Part shown: piece after piece, positions 1,826 through 33,712 of the stretch
Position numbering within the stretch: position 1 is the stretch's first letter
Layout of the letters: every line of letters begins with the position of its first letter
NCBI GenBank assembly: GCA_964035545.1
Contig: OZ037772.1
Coordinates: 10,042,818-10,106,817, forward strand
Direction of reading: 5' to 3'
Origin: Bugula neritina
Lineage: Eukaryota; Animalia; Bryozoa
DNA length: 64,000 nucleotides
The notes under the pieces: model-generated
What the model was told of the DNA's origin: nothing
The model's database searches: none
The model's input: the letters and a program-made list of their open reading frames with translations, nothing else
Made by a program: the position numbers and the translations under genes

Positions 1826-4800
1826 ATGGCCCTTACATTTCATGTAGCTGAGCCGTGGTCCGGTACTGGGTGGCCTGTGTCCTTATTTGACGATAAGGTG
1901 AGTTGATGTAACTTGTTACTACTCAACTTTGTGTCTAACAAATGAATATGTAGTGCCAAAACTCCCTTTTCAGCTTGGTCTATTGTCTAAACTATATGTT
2001 GGTTCTAAGATAGACTTTTCTCTTCAAGGAGTATTGATATACCAGAATAATGTTAACTCTGTTTAGCAGAATTCATGTTCATTGATAAATTTATTTATTA
2101 CTAGAACAATATTCAACCAGTATAATTTGCCCGAATTTCAAGAAATTATTTTTCAGTAATTTTGAAGCGGAAATATTTCATTTTATTGTAAAGCGTGGCT
2201 CGTGAAGATGTTTTATGACTAGGTGTGTTTCAGATAGAATTGATGTCAGTCTTTAATTTTGTGTATAATGTTGCGTGATGTAGGTTTCTTTATTGGAAAA
2301 GGGTATATATTTTTGCACCCGAGAAGAGTGCTGTAAAACCGAAAAGAGGATCACCAGGGAACCGTGGCAGTTCAGTTGCGGGCATCGAGTCTGTAGAGCA
2401 TGTCATGATCACATCCGAGATAACTTGTGAGTTGAAGGAATTATGCAATAATTTTTTATCTGTATGTTGACAGCTTAGTGCCGCGTTTATTCATTTAGTT
2501 AGTAATTTAATAATGTAAGTTTTTTGACAACTATGAATATACAACTAGGATATATGCTCCATGTAAGAGAAAAATTAGGTAAAAGCATTGGGCAAAGTTA
2601 CATGATAGCTCTATATAAAACATTAGCCACTTCACAGTATAAAATGCATTTATAATATATAATTTATCATTATAATGATAAAGTCAAGATTATTTGTAGC
2701 TTTAAGAAAATGTTTAAATTAATTTTTGAAACTTGGAAATACAATTCGATTTGTCAGCAACATTTCATCTTTTTACTAAAAACTAAACTTTTCAGCTTTT
2801 GCTGCTTTGGGTTATACATTATCCTACAACCAGATGTAATATTTTATAGACTGGAATCCCAGCAAGTGTGCGATGCGTGTAAAAAGGAGCCTGAAAGCGA
2901 TGATGCAATCCCTTCAGAGCTAAACGCTGGCAATAAAACCTCCAATATTTCAACCAATCAAAACTCAGTTATTAATAAATCATTTGACGGGGCAGCACTA
3001 AACTCTCAACTAACCGCCGCAGCAAATAGTTTGACAGCTCCTAGTCAAGTAATTCAGAAGAAACAGATTGGACAAATTGGTGTGTATTAAGTGATTCTCG
3101 TCAGCACAGTATTGTATTGTTAATCAGTTTATGCGCTATGCTGACTTTAGTGATCTAGTTGGTTTGACACATAGAAGTTAGGATATAATAAACCCTTTTA
3201 GCTATTATATTTCAACTATTAAAAATTTTAATTACGTGCATCTGGTTAGAGTTTCTCAGATTAAAATATTTTTTTACTATACATAGTAGTTAGTATCAAA
3301 GGTAAAGGCCATTGGTGATGTTAGGAAGAACATCCAGTCATAATTGATCCTGTGCCTCATTTAAATAAGTCCTTAGCCTAATTTAAAGAAAAACCCTTTT
3401 TATCAGGGGTTCTCTCACAGGGATAGTGACTATAAACTTGTGTGAGTTTTTATAGTAACTAGTATCAACATCCTGTACTAACATCTACCAACATGCTGAA
3501 TGTAGTATGCTAGCCCACAACTTCTCTGTTTATTGATGCAGACTTTGAAAAAGCTAAGTCCGACTCGGCTGCAAACAGAGAAATTAATAGAATGGTGGTG
3601 ACTTGCCCCTTTGAATGTGGCAAAGATAATCTCACAATCAAAATTTTAGAGGTATGGCCATCAGCTAAAATTTGAATTGTTTTCTGGTGTTCATAGAAGT
3701 TATGAAAGTAGGGGTAGTAGTAATAGTACTTGTAGTAGTGGTGGTAGTAGTGGCGGTGGTGGTGGTGGTAGTGGTAGTACTAGTAGTAGTGGTAGTAGTA
3801 GTAGCGGTGGTAGTAGTGGTAGTGGTAGTAGTCGTAATAGTAGTAGGAATAGTACTTGTAGTAGCGGTGGTAGTAGTGGCGGTGGTAGTGGTGGTAGTGG
3901 TGGTAGTACTAGTAGTAGTAGTAGTAGCAGCAGCAGCAGCAGCAGCAGTAGCTTTGGATGCAATATCTTTGGAATCATTATTGACGCTGTAGCTGATCAC
4001 TCAACTGTGACATGATTTGACTTTTACAGAAACACATGCGCTCGTGTAAGGAGAGGCAAATGCGTTGCGACAATTGTGCAGCCATTATCAAGCCTTCCGA
4101 ACAGGAAACTCACGTCTGCTTTAGTCCTGGAATGGATGTTGCTATGGAAACAGAGTCAGCTGTGAGTCAGCCTGTTATATATATATATATATATATATAT
4201 ATCTGTGCGACTTTGAGTTTTGTAAAAGACGCAAGCACTGAGTGAAATATTCTCCTTTCGTTGGAAATTGTTTAATATATTCAATAATATATATTGGCTC
4301 AGTGTTGTGCTGAGGTTTAGATGTTCTACTAGTCGGTGTCGTATATGTAGGGTGCTTCCGGATCAGGCAATATTATTCCGATGGAATCAGACTCTCTAGA
4401 GAAGTTTATACCGGATCCGACATCGGCAGCATGCCAGAGTGCCGGCAGCGATGTGGCGGCAGCCAGGCCTGACTTGTCACAGACTTACCCTCCTGAGAGT
4501 GGTATATATTACATAATGTATTAGTAACATGTTTGGCCTCGTGGAAATGGTATATGTTATATATATTAGGAAGTAGCAGTTGATATTGAATGTTGTTGAC
4601 ACAACACTAGATTGTGATTGGTTGGCTGTCTGTTATCAAAAGGAGACTAGTTCCAGAATCTTCTGATAAAATAAACTAACTCTACTTTTGTATTAAGCGA
4701 AAATTGCTTGAAGCAGCACAGAGTTAGTGGTCACTGAGTGCATTCATCCAGGGTCTTGAGTTTGAATAGCAGTAGGTATAGGAATAAGGGTCATCAGTCA

Positions 4801-6028
4801 CCCCAACTCAGTGCTTCATCTAGCGATATTTCTATAAAGCGGTGAAGCTAGTTCATAACTCGTCTCCAGCCTTTTTTAACTAATACTGAAGTCATCTTAT
4901 GTTTTTTTGTGTTCTCCTATTTAGTTGGCATCTATTTATGGTGTAGGAGAACCAAAAGAAAACTTCTTTGTTTAAAATTATGTTATCTATTATTTGATTG
5001 GCTAACACAGTTTTAGTTGATTTTCTGTATAGTGTCTGCCATGTTTGTCATACAGTATTTGTTTACATCTCTGTAGGTGACCACCAGATAGACACGGCGT
5101 CTGCACAGATGGTGGTGGACAACTCTCTAGGTAATTCTAATCTCTGGTTGGTTGGTCTTACATTAGCTGTGATTAGTCAATAGCTTGATTTTTATATTAG
5201 TTTATAGTCACTATCCCTGTGAGAAAACCCCTGATTGAAAGAATTTTTGTTAAAGCAGGCTAAGGACTTGTTCAGATGAGGCACAGGGACAATTATGACT
5301 GGATGCTCTTCCTAACATCACCAATGGCCTTTGTCTGGGCTCAAACCCATGACCTTGTGTTTACTAGGCAACCGCTCTAACCCCTAGACCACGGCTGCTC
5401 TCTGAAATGCTAACTTTGTGATATATATTTTATACTTGTATATTTTATACCATGGTTGCAGACATCTTTCATGAGCGACATTCTATAATTGGTTCTATTA
5501 TTATTCAATTAACTAGAAAACGTTTGACATAATCTAAGATTTTCTGTTTTTAATGTTTTAGGAAATGTATTATCTATTAATTATTTAATACTTATTAAGA
5601 TGTTTATATCAAGTGCCACCCCCCCCCCCCCCCCCGTATCTCAAAACCTCAACTCGTGACACGATAGAATACCATATTGAACTCAAGGATATTTTAAATT
5701 CACCCATTTTGTTCCTATACACACATACAAAAGCCACAAAACTTTTGGAATTTCGTGTGGAATGGAGCTGTGAGATATTGAGAGAGCACTCGTACTACAA
5801 TGTGTGAAATTACCTCTAACAAAGGGGTAAACCCTATTTCCAATATTCTAGAAAGATCTTCCACTCTTCCTCTACATACTATTCACCTACCGACTATTTG
5901 CAGGTGCTAACCAACCTAACACCATGTCTATGCAAATGGTGGCAGACGATTCTATAGGCAGCAGTCGTGCTGCCGCTAGCGTTGGCTCCATAAATGATCC
6001 ACCCCAACCTTCCTCACACAGCGGCTAG
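1826..6028 (+). CDS. TRAF-like paralogue A, truncated: RING + about 2 Zn fingers + low-complexity tail, no coiled coil or MATH; 338 aa
   Basis: Exons 1826-1897, 2284-2426, 2850-3079, 3542-3651, 4030-4161, 4351-4501, 5077-5130, 5904-6028; all GT-AG, 1017 nt in frame. Begins MALTFHVAEPWSGTGWPVSLFDDK; RING CTREECC..CGHRVCRAC..CDAC; DSAANREINRMVVTCPFEC; KHMRSC..CDNC. Exons 1-5 match B, C and D in phase and sequence. Exons 6-8 rest on splice sites and frame only. Confidence 0.8.
3301..3447 (+). mobile_element. SINE copy, 5' truncated
   Basis: Core ggccattggtgatgttaggaagaacatccagtcataa and 3' end gactataaacttgtgtgagt. Confidence 0.8.
3705..3951. repeat. Compound trinucleotide microsatellite (GTA/GTG/GCA)n in TRAF-A intron 4
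   Basis: Lies between donor 3652 and acceptor 4029. Confidence 0.95.
5200..5400 (-). mobile_element. SINE copy
   Basis: Reverse complement of the family from gtttatagtcactatccctgtgag to cccctagaccacggctgctc. Confidence 0.85.
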
Positions 6029-7274
6029 CTGGCAGTCTCAGGTTAGATGATGGATAATAATCTTTCAACACAAAACAAAGAAAAAATTTCAATTAATGTT
6101 ACTGATTCGTGCTAGAAGTCTATTTTGATTACAATAAATTTATGGTGCAGAAAAGCTACTGCCATTGCTGCTTTCATATTCTGTAGCCTTTGTTTTAATT
6201 TTTGTGATTTAGTGGGTCATTTATTGTCAGCCTGTGGTAGTTATTTGTGTTGTGTTATTTTTAGAACCACAAGCTAATAACTCAGCTCCCACTATCAGCT
6301 TACAGTATTCTTCCAATGCTTCATTACAGAGTTGTCCTCTCTTAGTTGGAATCGCCATAATTTCATACATTCAGTCCTAACCATTCGTTATGATATAACA
6401 TACTTCTCATACTTATAATGCTCAATTTATATAACCTTTATATATATATATTATTTTATTTACTCCATTTGGAGGCAAAGTATTTTGTAGTATTCATCTA
6501 TTCTTAGATTCTATATTAATAAACATATCAAATTTCTCATTCGTGAAAAGAGATCACTTTAAGAAACAACATAATATTATGTTTATCAGTTATGTTAAAG
6601 TCAGCATATATTAGGCTCATAAATGCTGTTAGTACTTAGGCCTGTTCAAATGAGACTTGACATATTTCATTTATTAAATCTACAGCAACTGAACGCTGCA
6701 AATATTCTCAGCATAATATGCTACAGCAGGCTGATTTTTTCCAACAAAGTAATTAGCTGATCAGTCTTTGGTCAGAAGGTTATCTAAATCAAAGCCTGGT
6801 ATACAGCTGTACAATAATATAAAGCTTTATTTACTGCGACAATATTTAATGCATTCATTCAGCAAAAAAATAACTCGCAATTTGCAATATTATATAATTT
6901 TGTAAAACAGACTAAATAGGTAATTTTTACACAGCATGTGATCAAAATAACTGGGTAACATTGTCAGACTGAATAAGATAGCTTATAAAGTGATGAGAGT
7001 ATCTTATGGCCATCTACTGAAAAACAACCAAAGCAAAAGAGAAATTAGGATACTAAGCAAGATAAGGAATAGGGTAACATGTTGGACTCTATGAATAATC
7101 TAATACATATTCCAATCAGTCTTCTAGAAAATTCATAGAATCACCAAGGAATTATTCAAACTCACCAAAAAATTATTATAAAATTAGAAATGAACTATAT
7201 ACGAAAAGAAATTTCCAAAAAAATTGAAAATCACAAATAATAAATATATTGGAAAGTGTTTAAAAACTTCCGAA

Positions 7275-10200
7275 TTAATTGATAGAGCTAGGTGTAACTT
7301 CCTGAATAGGATAATTCAAGCCGCTGAGAGACTCGTGAGAGCTATTGATTATAATTTCAATGAAAAGTGTGTCGTCCACCAGAAAGCCTGCAACAAGACA
7401 ACTTCTACAAGTCTTTATTATAACGGGTATTTCCTGTTAATTAGTATATATTCTTAGTAGTTATTTTATGAAAGCAAACGATTCATTGAATGGTGAAAAA
7501 AGGTGAAAGCAGCCTTTAAAGATCAAATCGTGATTTTTACAACTCTGAAAAATCGCCATAATTTCAATTTAATAATTAAAAAGGTAATAAAACAATATTG
7601 AGGATTACAATGATTCATTGTGACATCAAAACAAAAACTCTAGTATGAATATGTGACGCGATGTTTTACAAAACTGATCATATTGTGTCATACCCCAAAT
7701 AAGGAGAAAGATTATTGCAAAGTTAGAAGCTAGCTATTATATATTTTAAATAAAATACTTTAAACAATAAAATTCTAACATAAACAAGCTACAGTAAAAA
7801 GTGCTATGTTAATATACTCGATGGCAAAAAAGAAAAAAAGTCTTTTTTTAAATATTGCAGATTAAAAGATAACGGTTAGAATATATAGAATTATCCAGAA
7901 ATACAATTCACAAGACACCTGATAAATCCCATGACACTTAGAGAAGGTACTCTTGTGAAAGAGGGGGACATGAGTCAATATGAAAAGACATACTTATTGC
8001 TACCTGTACATTTGCTTACAAAGAATAAAATTTGAACCACTAACCGTTGTCTGTGTTGAAGACGTAAGATTGCTCTGCAAACTTCGGTACTCCCGAGGCT
8101 ACATTTCGCTCATTTCTCGGCTTTTGGAAAGAAGGCGAATTTGTATCGGGTTGAAACTTCTCCACAATATCTGGTTTTTTCTTAAGAATGTTTCTCAGCT
8201 TGAATGTAACCTGAAGGAAAGTGTATTTAGAGTCTTTATTAGTGATTACATCAGACGGAAATGGAATTATAGATTATCACAAGTAACCATTTTTGAAAGT
8301 TTTACAAGCAGTTTGCAGATCAGAAATCCCAGCTTTGCAACCAATCACATTGAAGCTTACAATCTAATATAACGTATGTGAAGTATGTCATCCAATCATA
8401 AAATACAATATCTCCCGTCACCCTGGTAACCCTTTTTGTTACCATGACACCAGTGCAATATTATTACCTCTTCCAATGCGTGAAACTTGTGTATAATAAT
8501 TCAGTAAGATATAATAAAGAAATGAATGCATACTTTCTGATGGAAAGGCCATGTCAGTAAAGCATCAAACTCTCCCTTCATCAGTACAAAAAAGAGCGAA
8601 ATATGAGAATTTCTTCCATTCCCATCACCTGAAAGCAGTATAAACAGATTAGTATATCACCTACCACTAAGACAACTAAAGTCATAGTAAAGTGGAATAT
8701 TCTAGAATCATCAGTAGAGATGAATGAAATGCCTATCGCACAAAACTCGCAATCTAAACTAATAAATGTCTTGCTTCTTGTTACACGAAAAATTTATTTC
8801 TATCGGAATTGAGCAATTTAGCTCATGGGTATCAATAAATGATGGCTACACAAACCTAAACTCTCAATATTACCACTAAAACCATAGTAAGGTGGAATGT
8901 TCTAGAAAGAGCCAGAGTAATAATCTACAGAGTGTAAGGTAGCCGATGGCGACAGAAGGAGAATTTGACTAACCATTAAGGTAGAGTCTGGCGCACATCT
9001 TGTATCCGTAGACTTCAGTGTAGAATGGGTGACTGAAGATGCTGTGTCTAGTGTAGGCGTCTTCTCTTCGCCTCTGGATATTGTCCACTCTCCACACCAG
9101 ATGTGAATTGAACGACGTCTGCAAGTAAGAACCCAGCCAATTTTAAAACTATGTAAATAGCAACTCAAAGAAAATAAATTCGTCCAAATAAAATTAAAGT
9201 GATTTAAACATTATTTATGGTTGGGTGCAGCTTTTCCCTGGCATGATTGCTCTATGTATTTCTTTAAAACACATGATTATGATATCCCAGTAAACCCACC
9301 ACCTACAGCCCAGTAAACCCACCATTCCTTACAACTTGTTTTAGCATTTTAAAAAGTCAAGCTCTCTTATAACACAACATTATAATACACAAAGTAAACC
9401 AGCCAATAACTCTGGCTAATAAAACAGAGAAAAAAGAGAATCATACCATCTGCAGTTGGTTCAAAGCAGTTTTCTGATCTTCTATCTCTGCTACTCTGAT
9501 GTTTGAGAGAGTTTCCAGTTTGTTGAGCTGCTCCGTAGCGTCATTCTCAGTCTTAGTTGTCTTCTCAGTCAGAGCTCTAAACGTCGAGTCATATGACGTC
9601 AACCTGGTCACAAGGTCAAGGAAATATAATTTTATTGAGTGGAATTATCTCCCTATTGTACATGAGTGAAAAGACTCAAGTGATTCCTAAACTAGTGATT
9701 AAAAAATTGTCTTCTATTTATACCTGAGCCTTCAATAATTGATTATGAATATTTAGGCTGTTTTTAAAATATTACTATGACACGGATAGTAATTATTTGA
9801 AATCCGAAATATACATAAATTAAGGGTAAACGGGCATAAAGACAGATGATAACTTTAACCCTTGAACTCACGGTAAAGTCATTAGAGTCAACAAAGAGTT
9901 GACTGTAACTAAAACAAGTTACAATATTCTTGCTACTAAGTGAATTCCCCCGCACACAAATATCTCTACAGTCTTTATTCACATAAGCTACTTGACCAGA
10001 CATGAATAAGGAAAATTTACTATGTGTACAATCATTTGTCCCTTTGTTTTGGCCGACTTCTGAACTAGGTCATCGAGCAAAAGAAGTTGCCCACCGTGGC
10101 CTAGAAAATTCTTAGTATTGCTTCATTTTGTTAAGCCAAGATCTCTGCTATCATTAGATTCACAGAAACTTCTTGACTATACATGAACCATGACAACTAG

Positions 10201-13200
10201 AATAACTTACATGTGCACGTCCTGGGCCAGCACTTTGAACAAAGAGTCTAAATCATTGAGATCACTTCGGTTTTTCTGCGCCAGACGTGCGTTCTCCATG
10301 AGACTTCCTGCAGACTCCCCGGTCAGGTGATTTACCTTGTCTAACTGTGGGAACATCTCAAGAGTCAACTCTGACACTAACCTTAGCATATGCACACTCT
10401 AACTCACTCACCCAAGTGTATAGTCAACTGTGAGTAACCCTGATGGAAATTACTTTATGTTAAAGCAGACTAAGGACTTATTCAGATAGAGTACAGGAGC
10501 AATTATGACTGAATGTTCTTCCTAACACCACTATTAGTGTTTGACTCGAACCACTACTCAGCTTGTGTTTACTAGGTGAGCACTTTAACTGCTTACTAAG
10601 TTGTTGAAAAGTTGAATTTTCAAGCATAGTTGAAATCCTTGAACTCCATCAAAAGATAAAGAATTCTCAAGTACATTAAATAAGCAAAGTCTAATGGCGC
10701 AATTAAAAGTTATTAATATATCATAGTGAAAGAGAGATGTTGGTTGACTGGTGTGAAGTTGCATCGCAATTACACACTGTGACATTTAAAAAAACAATGA
10801 CATTATAATATATGTTAAGCGAAACTAATTAATTCAATATATTCAAGAACTAGCTATATTTATTAGCAACACTACCCTGTCCATCACTTAGACTATGGAC
10901 TATACTGTGTATATCATTTATACTATGACTCATATTTACTCTGTCCAGCACTTACACCATGAGTCATATACTGTGTCTATCACTTAGACTATGACTCATA
11001 TTTACTCTGTTCAGCACTTAAACTATGAGTCATATACTGTGTATATAACTTGTATTATGAGTCACACCACAGCTACTTACCAACTCTCTATTAGCTCTGT
11101 CTGTTTTACTCTCCAGCTGTATGAGTCTGTCCAGAAAAGAGGAGAGTTGAGTTTTGGATGAACCCGTTCCAGAGGCGCCGGGCTGGCTACTGAGAGCCGT
11201 CTCTGTCTCTCGTAAAAGAACCATCATGGAGTGGAGATGACGACCCATCAGTGCCTTGTCATTTAGATGTTCCACCAGGTTTACCACATCCATCTTAAAA
11301 ACAGAATGTTCAAGGATTACCAAAATATCAACTATAAGCTTTAGCTGCGCTACTTCCATATGGGTGACAAGTTAAAAACTCACGAAGGTTACTCATACAA
11401 GTTTATAGTAACCATCTCTGTGGGAACTCCTGAAAACAAGGTATTTTTAAAAATGGGCCGAGAAGTTATCCATATGTTGCACAGGAGCAATTATGACTGG
11501 ACGATATTTCCAAAAAATCCTCAACGACCTTTGCTGGGGTTTGAACCGATAACTCCGTGTTTACTAAGCCACCACTGTAACCCCCTAGACCCCGAATACT
11601 ATGCTATATGGGTAAAAGTTTAAAGGTATTGTTAAATTTTTGCGGACTGATTGAGCATAGGAGCATAGAATTTCTCCAGAAGTGTAATTAGGATGCTAAA
11701 ATGCAATGCTTAAAATTTACAGTTCAATATTCATATATTATTATTTATGCAAATGAAAATTAACATGATTTGCAGCATAACTGTGCTTCAATTTGAGATT
11801 CATCAGAGAAAATTGTGTGCCAACAGCATATCTCGCAATAATCTCAAATCTGACTTTACAAGCAAATGTAACAAGTGAAGATAACTCAAATATAAAACAG
11901 TATTAATACTTGAAAATCTATGACAGAATTGCAATAAAATGGAAAAAAATGAAAGGAAACTTTTCGTAAACTATTTAGATAATCTAAGACCCTAACAGCA
12001 AAGTCGGGATTTTCCAGATTATTGAGCCGCTCACTTATAAACATTTACTTCCTTGTTCCGCGAATACTATGGTCTACTACATATTATATTATACAAATGA
12101 CAGTGTTCTAAAGCATAGTGTGCATCAGCCAGAGTCCATAGAATTGAGATGGTTTTGTAGAAGAAACATCAAATAAACTAGGCAAACAGACATACAAAAA
12201 AATAGCTTTTCTAACCATCCTAACCTGAGGTTAGAAGACTGAAATAATTGCAGTCTGCGTTTCCAGCACTGCTTGGACAACAATGGGAAAACAACCTGAA
12301 TTGGGTCATTTTATTTAGTTTAGTACACACTGGAAATCTCCAGTTTTTAGCTATTTTTTACAATTTAGCTGAAAAACTGGAGATTTCCAGTCTGTAAGTA
12401 AAATGACACAATTATATTTTCAGAGTTCTCATAGTAAAAAACCCAAAGCTCTTTAGTATAACAAAATAAATAAAAGGTCGCATTAAATCCCAAAATGGCA
12501 GTAAACATTTGATCACAAAACAATTGCCAACTCTCAAGCAAATTTTCTTCTTTACATTCTAAACCTCCAACATGTTTATTTTCTATCCAATAAAACACCT
12601 AAGAATTAGCTCAACAACAAAGTTCTAAGGCATGCAGAGATATTCTACCTTGCCACAGTTGAGAGGGCATTTAGCAACACATCTGGCCAGGTGGGAGTGG
12701 GCGTCTTCACCCAACTCGTACGGATTCTTGCAGACGCTACATATCGGCGGCTTGTTCTCACACTCAGCTAAATGTTGCTATGAAATAACAAGAATACGCT
12801 ACACTGCATGTTGATATATAACAAGGGCCAAGTTCAGAGGTCAGTCAAAACGAAGGGTCACATAATAAATTTTATTATAATAAAGTAATTTGTCACCAAA
12901 CCTATACTGTGCTAATCAGAATGCATATAACACTTTTTTTACATATCTTTAGCATTAAAAGGGCCACTGAAAAATAGGCAAAGGGTCACAGGTGGCACTG
13001 GGGTCCCTCGTTACCCACCCCTACTACACGATAACAAGAATATGTTAGCCGTTGACTGTTAAAAAATTGAGTCACGAGCAAACTGAAACTTACAGTCAAG
13101 TCTTTGCCTCTCAGTCCCCTTTTGCCACATTTATTGGGACAGTCAATGATTCTGAAGGGGCAGGTGTTGGTGTCGTGTTTGGAGCGTGCTGAATAGGCGA

Positions 13201-15890
13201 TGATGTCAGTGCATTTCTCGCACGGCACCAGTCTCTCCGTGCATGTGATCATGTGTTTCTGGAGGAAATAAACAGCAGCACTCATAGTTACTGTACATAA
13301 TCATCCATCACAGTTGAAATAAACAGCAATACTACTATTTAGTCATCAGCCACTAAAACACTGTACGTAATCATCCACTATTACAATATTGTATAATTTA
13401 TTCATTCAGAATAATTTCTATGTATTTCACGTAAAAAACTATTTGGGGAAAAATCTGGAGCGAAAATATTGTGTTGCCAATAAAATTTGTTAACTCATCA
13501 ACTGTTAGACGGCTGGTGCACCCTTAGATAGTTTTTTATACTTTGTAAGCTTCGTTATTTTGAATGCAACCTTACTTCATCTTAAAGAAAAACTATTGCA
13601 TAAATATAGTGCGTGATTAGTCACATGACCTTACTTCAATGTGTTCTGATTCATTCTAAATAAATTTATTTTATGAAGGAAAAAAACCTATATTAGAACA
13701 CTGTAATATTACAATAAAAGATAAATATATATCTTAAGCCCTTGTAACTGTAGATGATTTGTTTATACTAGCGATTCTACTTCCTGGCTTTTAGAGAGTT
13801 CAATATAGCATAAGAATAACTACACAATTAAAATCAATAATTTGGAGTAATTGTCAACTGTAACCAAGTCGTTGGCAGGCAAAACAACAACACTGCTTAT
13901 GTAAGATGTAAAATGGCCCAAAGACAAACCAGAAAGAAGGTTATGAATACTTACCTCTAGGGTTCTGATGATCAGGGGAGTTGGGTCAGAACAGTCAAAC
14001 GGACACTTCACTGACATCCTGTTGATCTCCTTGTTTGTGGCATTATCTTTCATGACTAGCGTGAAGTCTATAGAAAATACAGAGTTCAAAGTTCAAGGCA
14101 AACCGAATAAACCATTTTATTCAAATCTTTCTATAAACAGCTCCGAGTTGGGAGCGACTGAGTTCAGTAGTTTGGGGTTCTCAAACTTTGAGTTGGTGGT
14201 TTCAACATAGAACTACCCCCCCCCCTGTGAACTCGAGATCTCACACTACTGCCCTTAGTCAGCCCCAACTCTGGGCTGCTTATAGACAATTTTGTTTTAT
14301 GCAACCTTAACTAACATGTAAACATTTAGAAAATTTGCTTGTTACTCTAATAATTGAGATGAAGAATTTCATTCTTGTTTAGAATGGCATGTAACAACTG
14401 GAGGATTTGGTCAGTTTATGAAATGAATTTAATTTGTAAACATGTAACAGTGTGAAATTATAATTATGCCCTTTAGATTATATATATGAAGTCATGCAAA
14501 AAGAGGCCTATGCTCTTATTACAAGGTGGTGTTATTGTAGGTTATATGCAATAGGATTGCGGTTAGTATATTTTTGCGATTGAAGTCTTGACCATGTTGA
14601 ATAATGGTTTGACTCAGAGGTTTAGAGGCAGACCTATCCTCGCGAGTCTGTTAGTCTGAGAATCTCCCTCCACATCCATTGGTCGATGCATGCTTGGAGG
14701 AAGTGCATCATAAGTGAGACTATCGTCAATTTCCATACGCGTCTTTCCGGAAACATCCGAGTTACTCATCATTAAACGGTTGCCGTCATCATTTGCCTCC
14801 AGTTGGCAGGCATCACATGTTTGCTGATCCTCAGGTCTACACAGTATCAAACCCCCGTCTCTCAAACAACAATATGCAAAGGAAACCACGCTAATATATC
14901 TGCAGGTAAAATCCAAACTACACAATAGGTTGAGATAATCCGATTAGAGAAAAGGAGTTGTCTCATTCCATGATTACCCACAACCCCTTGCAACAAATCT
15001 ATTTTCGTGTTTCTCTATTTTCGTATCATAAAATATAACGATTCTGTGAACAACAACTTTACATATTCAATCACAATACTTAAATTTAGTAGTATGGCAT
15101 CAGAGTTCATCTCAACAGGTGACAGTTATAAAATTTTAGTTTCTTATTTTGCTGATGCCAAACTAAGAATTTTTCATGAATATAGCAAGAGACCTGCAGA
15201 TGTACAGAGAGTATCAACTGCTGCAGAAGTACAGAGAATATTAACTGCTGCAGATGTACAGAAAATATCAACAGAAAATATTCCACAAGGTTCTACATAC
15301 AGGTTATGGATTATATCCTGACAAGCTTTACACATTCTGTGACCGCAGCTCAACTGCCATGGCTCTCTGGTGATCCGTTCATTCTTTCTCCCACACTCAT
15401 AGCGAGCACAAAAGTAAATCTCCAAAAGAAGTTTCTAGATAAAAACAAAAAGAAACATGTAAATTGTAGTCTGTAAACTAAAGTTACATTCAATAAAGCC
15501 TGAAATGCCTTACACCGGCTATACAATGCAGCAAAACCTTTCACAAGCAAAATTAAAAATAAAATTGAAACCTGTTGACTGCTTGAATTTGTTGACTTTT
15601 TAAAAAATTGATTTTTTTAAAAAAAAACTAAATCGAACGTCTACTGATTTCACTCAACATAGAACTATGTGCACTGGATTTACAGGTACATGTTATTCTA
15701 ATCAACTAAGTAACTGTTGAAACTCAATTTTGAACTGTTGAAAAATTTCTCAACACAACCTGAGAGATGCTACAAATACTCTGTTAGGATAGAACTAGAG
15801 GATATTTACCCGGTCTGTGAACAAGCTTAGCGGCCATCCTGTCCCCGACCAGGGCTCTATTACGCGGGGAGTACTCTTTAATGATGACAT
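7275..15890 (-). CDS. TRAF: TRAF2/3-like paralogue B, full length (RING, 5 Zn fingers, coiled coil, TRAF-C/MATH); 615 aa
   Basis: 13 exons: 15890-15810, 15434-15301, 14836-14634, 14067-13955, 13258-13094, 12777-12649, 11293-11081, 10344-10211, 9603-9447, 9118-8974, 8628-8534, 8210-8045, 7387-7275; 1848 nt in frame. MATH signatures [59 protein letters not shown]. Confidence 0.93.
10396..10590 (-). mobile_element. SINE copy, diverged
   Basis: actcactcac tail and aattatgactgaatgttcttcctaacacca core. Confidence 0.75.
10875..11045. repeat. Minisatellite, about 30-bp units (ctgtccagcacttagactatgactcata..)
   Basis: About 5 degenerate copies. Confidence 0.8.
11391..11593 (-). mobile_element. SINE copy, diverged
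   Basis: gtttatagtaaccatctctgtg .. gcacaggagcaattatgactgg .. cccctagacc. Confidence 0.75.
14131..14285. mobile_element. MITE-like palindromic element (about 155 bp)
   Basis: Imperfect TIRs ctataaacagctccgagttgggagcgactgag / ttagtcagccccaactctgggctgcttatag. Related copy at 51295-51445; fragment near 4790-4840. Confidence 0.7.
15193..15272. repeat. 27-bp tandem repeat x3 (ctgcagatgtacagagagtatcaactg)
   Basis: Read directly; intronic in TRAF-B. Confidence 0.85.
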
Positions 15891-32900: not shown

Positions 32901-33712
32901 TGATTGACACATACTAAGGGGTAATTGTCATGTGATATGTGATTGGCACATGTTGATAGAAAAATCATTTAAACTTATCTGAGTGTCCATTTACTTCCTC
33001 TCCGCAGGTTACCATGAAGCTGAGAAATGTCACCAAGAACCGACCAGATATAGTGGAGAAGTTCAGACCAGAGCCGAGTTCTTCTTCTTTCCAGAGACCC
33101 AAGAATGAGATGAACATAGCGTCTGGTTGTCCCCAGTTTGCTGAACAAGCTCACGTCTTCAACCCAGACAATGGTGAGCTCACACTCAATTGTTATCTAT
33201 ATTTTACGCTGCTAAATCGATCATTTAAGAGCAGTAGTGGAGAAATTGAGATAGCCTCAGTTTCTTTGAATTTTGGTTTGGTGCGCGCGTTGAAATTTTT
33301 CGAGAACATAACTTCTTTTGCTACATTTCTAATCTAGAGCTCAGGTTTTTTTCCATTGCTGTACCTGTCTCAACCCTATTGTCTCACTATTCTATGATTC
33401 GTTTTCTGCCAGTTTGAAATTATATTTAACTCTGTGTTTGCACTTCCATTTTATGTAAAGAATCTTATTAATTCCTTGCCTGTGAAGTATTTTAAGACAG
33501 TATTTATTGTCACAACTCTGAAGACGTACTAATGCTCTATTTATCTCTTCTTGGGTGCGGTGAGTTGCATCATGCTGTTTCTTGTAGGTTTTGTTGTTGA
33601 CGACACGATGTACATAGAGATCATGGTGGACAACTCCTACGAAGCTCTTCACGGTTTGAATATATCCGTTCAGGAAATGACTCGTGGGTATTCCAATAAT
33701 GGCGCAAAGTAA
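26504..33712 (+). CDS. TRAF: TRAF2/3-like paralogue D, full length; 618 aa
   Basis: 13 exons: 26504-26584, 26681-26820, 27199-27401, 27592-27704, 29254-29418, 30015-30143, 30279-30482, 30857-30990, 31216-31372, 31713-31857, 32302-32396, 33008-33173, 33588-33712; 1857 nt in frame. Canonical TRAF2/3 MATH motifs [49 protein letters not shown]. Confidence 0.95.
26866..27023 (-). mobile_element. SINE copy with internal deletion
   Basis: accaatggcctttgtcggggttcgaacccatgac .. ccacggctgctcc. Confidence 0.8.
27851..28050 (+). mobile_element. tRNA-derived SINE, near full-length reference copy (about 200-230 bp)
   Basis: A-box TGGTCTAGGGG and B-box-like GGCTCAAACCC. Core GGCYATTGGTGATGTTAGGAAGA..ATCCAGTCATAA; 3' end GACTATAAACTTGC followed by a (GAGT)n tail. 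About 13 copies in the window. Confidence 0.85.
29847..29906. repeat. (AT)n microsatellite
   Basis: About 30 units. Confidence 0.95.
30150..30272. repeat. 24-bp minisatellite x5 (tattatattacactgtatatatca) filling TRAF-D intron 6
   Basis: Occupies nearly all of the 135-nt intron. Confidence 0.9.
30580..30791 (-). mobile_element. SINE copy
   Basis: gcaagtttatagtcactatccctgtgag .. ctagaccacggctgctccct. Confidence 0.85.
32675..32958. repeat. 21-bp minisatellite (ggtgattgacacttgacatgg), about 13 copies
   Basis: Read directly; TRAF-D intron 11. Confidence 0.9.

Follow-up and report, generated by a model that had tools for sequence, protein, structure and literature searches.

Signalling by TRAF adaptors is thought to need receptor-driven clustering, single motif-groove contacts being weak. 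Receptor tails such as those of OX40 and CD27 carry the sequence PIQE, and in TRAF2 complexes ligands enter from the membrane side, while the MATH C-terminus exits on the coiled-coil side. The major TRAF motif, Px(Q/E)E, has P/S/A/T at -2, Q/E at 0 and E at +1, these being the contacting positions; an acidic or polar residue is favoured at +2, which is a preference and no absolute requirement (PMC6125299). On the groove side, TRAF1 tolerates Ala at one serine of the triad (PMC6125299). [quoted passage not shown] Both receptor and membrane are needed for this lattice, whose contacts are weak (PMC12216653).

We analyzed a window of 64,000 nucleotides from the bryozoan Bugula neritina, which holds the gene of an immune-signalling adaptor, TRAF-B. 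Judged from its sequence, the locus encodes an otherwise ordinary TRAF2/3-like adaptor with a bryozoan-clade extension, a conserved receptor-like tail with a putative ligand role. Our literature search on TRAF autoinhibition, self-carried TRAF motifs or bryozoan TRAFs found nothing relevant, though its coverage was incomplete and it is weak evidence for novelty. The features on which the analysis draws are:

7275-15890, minus strand: whole TRAF-B coding sequence with RING-like, zinc-finger, coiled-coil and MATH exons (exon-by-exon tblastn)
8974-9118, minus strand: first MATH exon, with the equivalents of R393 and Y395
8534-8628, minus strand: MATH exon with the equivalents of D399, G400 and F410, and WPF
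8045-8210, minus strand: penultimate exon with the serine-triad region S-P-S (S454P) and beta7 (C469V)
7275-7387, minus strand: terminal coding exon with the last MATH strand, the 22-residue tail and TAA at 7277-7275 (translation)
7311-7343, minus strand: linker of 11 residues, SSHESLSGLNY, a conserved block with the consensus xSYExLHGLN (alignment, structure comparison)
7293-7310, minus strand: PIQEVT, in which PIQE at 7310-7299 matches Px(Q/E)E (translation; motif definition from PMC6125299)
33590-33712, plus strand: terminal exon of the paralogue TRAF-D, with a homologous tail and SVQEMT (matches KAF6020551.1)

TRAF-B and its terminal exon

Exon-by-exon tblastn placed the ATG of TRAF-B at 15890 and found its exons colinear with Watersipora subatra XP_067940751.1. 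This colinearity and a zf-TRAF match at 12986-13285 (E 2.9e-4) identify an N-terminal RING-like region, TRAF zinc fingers and a coiled-coil. The MATH domain is of TRAF type according to PF21355 (TRAF-mep_MATH) and to the orthologue model (Z 27 to TRAF2/3). PF21355 reached 48.8 and 33.4 bits on TRAF-B exons in the genome search, above the cut-off, and E 3.7e-5 on the upstream exon, a 56-residue piece that falls under the curated cut-off. On sequence grounds TRAF-B is a full-length TRAF2/3-like (TRAF1/2/3/5-type) adaptor, ordinary apart from its extension. Two stretches inside introns of the gene, at ~10470-10530 and 11466-11560, are copies of a short repeat that is of very high copy number by contig depth.

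Translation of 7385-7275 on the minus strand reads through the last MATH strand into a 22-residue tail and a TAA stop. A CAG acceptor precedes 7387, a GTTAGT donor follows exon 8210-8045, and the phases are compatible. Translation and splice signals thus bear out the initial annotation, which had described an extra tail with PIQEVT at 7310-7293 beyond the last MATH strand; it was also right that vertebrate TRAF2 ends soon after this strand (4 residues, against 22 in TRAF-B). The exon junction at 7387 is spliced likewise in L060, a transcript of a relative that includes a tail, and in the Watersipora RefSeq model. An unspliced contig assembled from run X1 equals 6000-7935 without difference and probably derives from the window's own sample, so that it is not independent. 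That the tail is an artefact, left untranslated by use of another last exon or splice form, would fit with the finding that no database protein for TRAF-B was retrieved, but is very improbable given the canonical splice signals and phase, the tail in the relative's transcript and the RefSeq model, and purifying selection with a conserved stop (see below).

PIQE (7310-7299) satisfies positions -2, 0 and +1 of Px(Q/E)E. The proposal of a TRAF-binding motif therefore holds for the pattern P/S/A/T-x-Q/E-E but fails for a CD40-type PxQxT: the minor motifs PxQxT and PxQxxD require Thr at +2 or Asp at +3, and in TRAF-B these two positions are Val and Thr. The +2 preference of the major motif is not followed by TRAF-B and a distant metagenomic homologue, L056 (both Val), nor by D (Met); Thr occurs there only in Watersipora. 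The degenerate motif has a frequency of ~0.2% per residue in TRAF proteins. A chance match is expected in 3.6-4.0% of 22-residue tails with background frequencies and in 7.7% with the shuffled TRAF-B tail, falling to 0.3% for the strict PxQE. Because chance amounts to 4-8% per tail, a lone match in one tail is weak and can do no more than suggest a motif; the argument depends on conservation. By inspection, the tail was ruled out as a TRAF6 PxE motif (Q at that position), as a class I PDZ ligand (wrong terminal residues) and as an Hsp70-type EEVD (not terminal, no Asp).

Retention and loss of the tail in bryozoan TRAFs

The initial annotation attributed the tail to TRAF-B, where it is indeed present but not unique: TRAF-D, also a complete TRAF by exon-by-exon tblastn, has a homologous tail with SVQEMT. 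The last two exons of D match Bugula neritina KAF6020551.1 almost exactly. This type of terminal exon is present in four genes of the genome, B, D, Z, which lies ~17 kb before the window, and Y, at a distance of 1.6 Mb; the remaining TRAFs of the genome stop 5-17 residues past the last strand and lack the motif. Watersipora has a single such gene, flanked by a TADA1 and a MYND gene, and D too is followed by a MYND gene, for which reasons the cluster looks like a tandem expansion in Bugula. A tree of the penultimate exon is compatible with expansion but poorly resolved, grouping Bugula B, D, Z and Y at 80/80 only, so that L056 cannot be called a TRAF-B orthologue. KAF6020551.1 (annotated as TRAF3), KAF6020546.1 (Bugula) and XP_067940751.1 (Watersipora, TRAF1-like) belong to the same bryozoan clade, and two of these three automatically annotated proteins have the motif-bearing tail.

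There are further TRAF sequences in the window and outside it. At 1844-4113 (plus strand) and 23722-19998 (minus strand) the window holds TRAF copies with RING-like and zinc-finger exons, each adjoining a full-length TRAF; tblastn found no coiled-coil or MATH exons in either. Similar N-terminal TRAF copies occur in L011. Contig C9 carries, at 5.07-5.43 Mb (L005-L009), another cluster of TRAF2/3-like genes, five or more in number and nearly identical; their serine triad is intact, their introns sit at other positions and their tails are short.

A sister-lineage copy of TRAF-B (L044) reads PLQEVT. Its intron and 3' flank are 13-14% diverged from TRAF-B, and the tails differ by 3 nonsynonymous and 5 synonymous changes (pN/pS 0.17), the stop changing from TAA to TGA. 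By this measure the TRAF-B tail is under purifying selection. SVQEMT of D stands in the same register as PIQEVT of TRAF-B, and the Watersipora subatra tail has SVQET in register, with synonymous sites saturated. Between D and Watersipora, linker plus SVQE give pS 0.98 and pN 0.06, and SVQE alone shows no nonsynonymous and three synonymous differences; in the ungapped comparison the residues past E are without constraint. L056 is 54% identical to TRAF-B in the preceding exon and its tail reads SIQEVT, followed at once by the stop.

Among five sequences picked for an ungapped tail (Y and Z left out), position -2 is P/S in 5/5, position 0 is Q in 4/5 and position +1 is E in 5/5; no two of the five share the residue before -2, and four different residues occur at +2. 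The spacing from strand to motif is 11 residues in all motif-bearing genes. Neither a tail above 16 residues nor a tail motif was found in the ~108 non-bryozoan TRAFs of alignment A2. Since the tail sequences share ancestry, they represent one origin with several retentions and no independent gains. The terminal exon alone as query gave no homologues, an uninformative result because the query is limited by its length; a metagenome scan with a single protein led to four loci. On one JGI contig (P0128), D's last exons recur in degraded form, apparently without introns and with SVQEMT still readable; this copy may be a processed pseudogene or an artefact of assembly.

The motif has also been lost. 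L060 and L063, a similar genomic copy, read STMES, in which the central Gln is gone, with a linker core identical to D in 8/8 positions and a canonical groove. Paralogue Z has a groove nearly identical to that of D and a tail that reads SPQH; in paralogue Y groove and motif are both gone. More distant TRAFs that share the intron (L047, L053, L058) have short tails, and no terminal exon was seen in contigs L055, L057, L059 and L064. The orthologue comparison suggested by the initial annotation came out largely in its favour: the core is in register in B, sister-lineage B, D, Watersipora subatra and the distant homologue, but lost in Z, Y and L060/L063, and the linker is equally conserved, its Glu and Leu being as invariant as the motif Glu. 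For this reason the selection seen on the tail is no specific sign of TRAF binding.

The same data bear on the idea of a structural extension, in which linker and next residues would pack on the MATH domain or on the junction of trimer and coiled-coil, the likeness to a QE motif being coincidental. A linker that is conserved even where the motif is lost (L060/L063) is what this idea would lead one to expect, one ancestral match with a chance of 4-8% per tail could have been inherited clade-wide, and bdelloid rotifer-type TRAFs have a long conserved extension without the motif. Constraint, however, extends through E but passes over the residue before -2, and the L056 linker is diverged (4/11 identical to TRAF-B) yet IQEVT is intact. 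We consider a purely structural role somewhat unlikely.

The tail might instead hold a different linear motif or bind a non-TRAF partner. S-x-x-E is an acidophilic (CK2-type) phosphorylation consensus; it is found in D, Watersipora, L056 and L060/L063, the last of which have lost Gln but retain S at -2 and E at +1. The C-terminal Lys common to D, Watersipora and L060/L063 hints that the tail has other functions too. TRAF-B and its sister copy nevertheless have Pro for Ser at -2 and keep QE, which suits a TRAF motif but no phospho-site, and we regard a phospho-site or a non-TRAF partner as quite unlikely.

Several observations on these sequences stand on their own. The serine triad and ASGCP of Y (contig C8 ~8397777-8398571, L013; also L065) are replaced in two Bugula lineages, and its tail is a conserved stretch of 26 residues without the motif, possibly marking a non-binding TRAF variant. 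Z (contig C8 ~10025604-10026181, L010) differs from D by one residue through the penultimate exon and strongly in the terminal exon, a pattern that suggests recent duplication or gene conversion halted at the last intron. D, Watersipora and the L060/L063 lineage (window 33698-33709; L060, L063, L066) have in common a C-terminal Lys, as GAK or NK, that follows a stretch rich in Gly and Ser; TRAF-B does not have it. In the L061-L063 lineage an extra intron, absent from Bugula, lies within the penultimate exon (ASG-CP stretch). The extension past the MATH domain of bdelloid rotifer-type TRAFs (P0012, which is Didymodactylos carnosus, P0028, P0041 and similar) is their own and lacks a QE motif.

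Predicted tail structure and the receptor groove

An AlphaFold2 monomer of the Watersipora orthologue stood in for TRAF-B, with L060 as motif-less control. The Watersipora domain was predicted with a mean pLDDT of 90.9 and superimposes on TRAF2 with Z 27.3 and an rmsd of 1.1 A over 166 residues. Within its tail the linker forms one short helix; the rest is coil, and the motif adopts no strand. Tail pLDDT was 54-64 with the motif (Watersipora) and 52-63 without it (L060). The linker helix is present in both models, which is compatible with a structural role. The motif segment is coil with pLDDT ~54 in the orthologue model, a low value that may reflect the shallow tail alignment. The first linker residues overlap the TRAF2 C-terminus, and in the alignment the linker Glu is paired with the last TRAF2 residue (501); that the linker lies where TRAF2 itself ends likewise suits a structural extension.

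Using TRAF2 numbering, the TRAF-B groove retains R393, Y395, D399, F410, F447 and F456, and the hot spot 3 pocket (R393, Y395, D399) is recognizable from CARLYLNG and GDG in the exons. Changed are S454P, C469V and L432F; 12 of the 117 aligned rows have Pro at 454. In D, positions 453-455 (SSS) and C469 are canonical, and D as well as five C9 TRAFs keep SSS and ASGCP. Because TRAF-B's own groove is altered and those of D and C9 are intact, a TRAF-B tail ligand would find better grooves on other TRAFs.

Could the tail instead fold back to occupy its own protomer's groove, or that of a neighbouring protomer within the trimer, and so raise the threshold for receptor binding? The fixed spacing of 11 residues between strand and motif is what a geometric constraint would need, and Y lost groove and motif together. 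From the end of TRAF2 to P-2, however, there are only ~8 free residues, and docking in cis looks strained because the C-terminus and the ligand entry lie on opposite sides. The AlphaFold2 monomer of the Watersipora orthologue showed no cis docking of the tail, a run that says nothing on binding in trans, and the TRAF-B groove carries S454P and C469V. With this short reach, altered groove and undocked tail, autoinhibition in cis became the weakest of the options offered by the initial annotation, and we judge it unlikely.

A putative ligand in trans and its relation to known systems

Our tentatively preferred reading is that the tail might be a lineage-specific, low-affinity TRAF ligand that acts in trans on other TRAF molecules. 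The clade gained a C-terminal extension consisting of a conserved linker and then [PS]-[IVL]-Q-E, and we infer that its flexible end may serve as a low-affinity ligand of TRAF2/3 type. With three tails, a trimer could gain avidity for the grooves of other TRAF molecules; the most plausible partners would have an intact serine triad, as in D or the chromosome-9 TRAFs. By competing with receptor tails or cross-linking trimers, the tail would tune TNFR-type signalling; paralogues Y and Z and one lineage later lost the motif. Besides the conservation of the tail and its absence from the non-bryozoan TRAFs of A2, we counted in favour of the trans ligand that Y lost both groove and motif and that D and the five C9 TRAFs keep SSS and ASGCP. 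Counted against it were the loss of the motif in L060/L063 though linker (8/8) and groove are unchanged, the SPQH tail of Z with its groove almost equal to that of D, the hydrophobic Val at +2 in TRAF-B, the equal invariance of linker Glu and Leu, and the undocked tail in the AlphaFold2 monomer.

Possibly, then, and with similar reserve, bryozoans have a TRAF clade with its own ligand, in which three receptor-mimic tails per trimer bind the grooves of other trimers or their own; this could provide built-in receptor competition or receptor-independent TRAF-TRAF networks that are switched off in some paralogues by loss of the motif. If true, joining ligand and TRAF in one protein would be a natural way for the adaptor to set the clustering threshold itself. 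Some genes kept the motif (B, D, Watersipora) and others lost it (Z, Y, L060), and with short peptides from this natural series the ligand idea can be put to the test. Should its role be purely structural, the tail would amount to a small addition, specific to the lineage, to an ordinary TRAF.

Compared with vertebrate TRAF1/2/3/5 (PDB 1CZY, 1CZZ, 4GHU, 4GJH), TRAF-B is alike in fold (as judged from the Watersipora model), hot spot 3 and domain order. It differs from vertebrate TRAF2 in its 22 instead of 4 residues past the last strand and in S454P, C469V and L432F. PIQE of TRAF-B and SVQET of Watersipora fit the Px(Q/E)E of TNFR tails (CD40 PVQET) at -2, 0 and +1, but TNFR tails carry the motif on the receptor, whereas the bryozoan motif sits on the TRAF itself. 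The BAFF-BAFFR-TRAF3 lattice is receptor-dependent, whereas a receptor-free lattice mediated by bryozoan tails is hypothetical and, at this stage, speculation; as the contacts of the known TRAF3 lattice are weak, extra links between tail and groove could matter. Soluble competitors of the TANK/I-TRAF type (PDB 1KZZ, 5H10), non-receptor proteins that offer the motif and fill the receptor groove, provide the working analogy. TANK is a separate protein, whereas TRAF-B would carry its putative ligand as part of its own chain.
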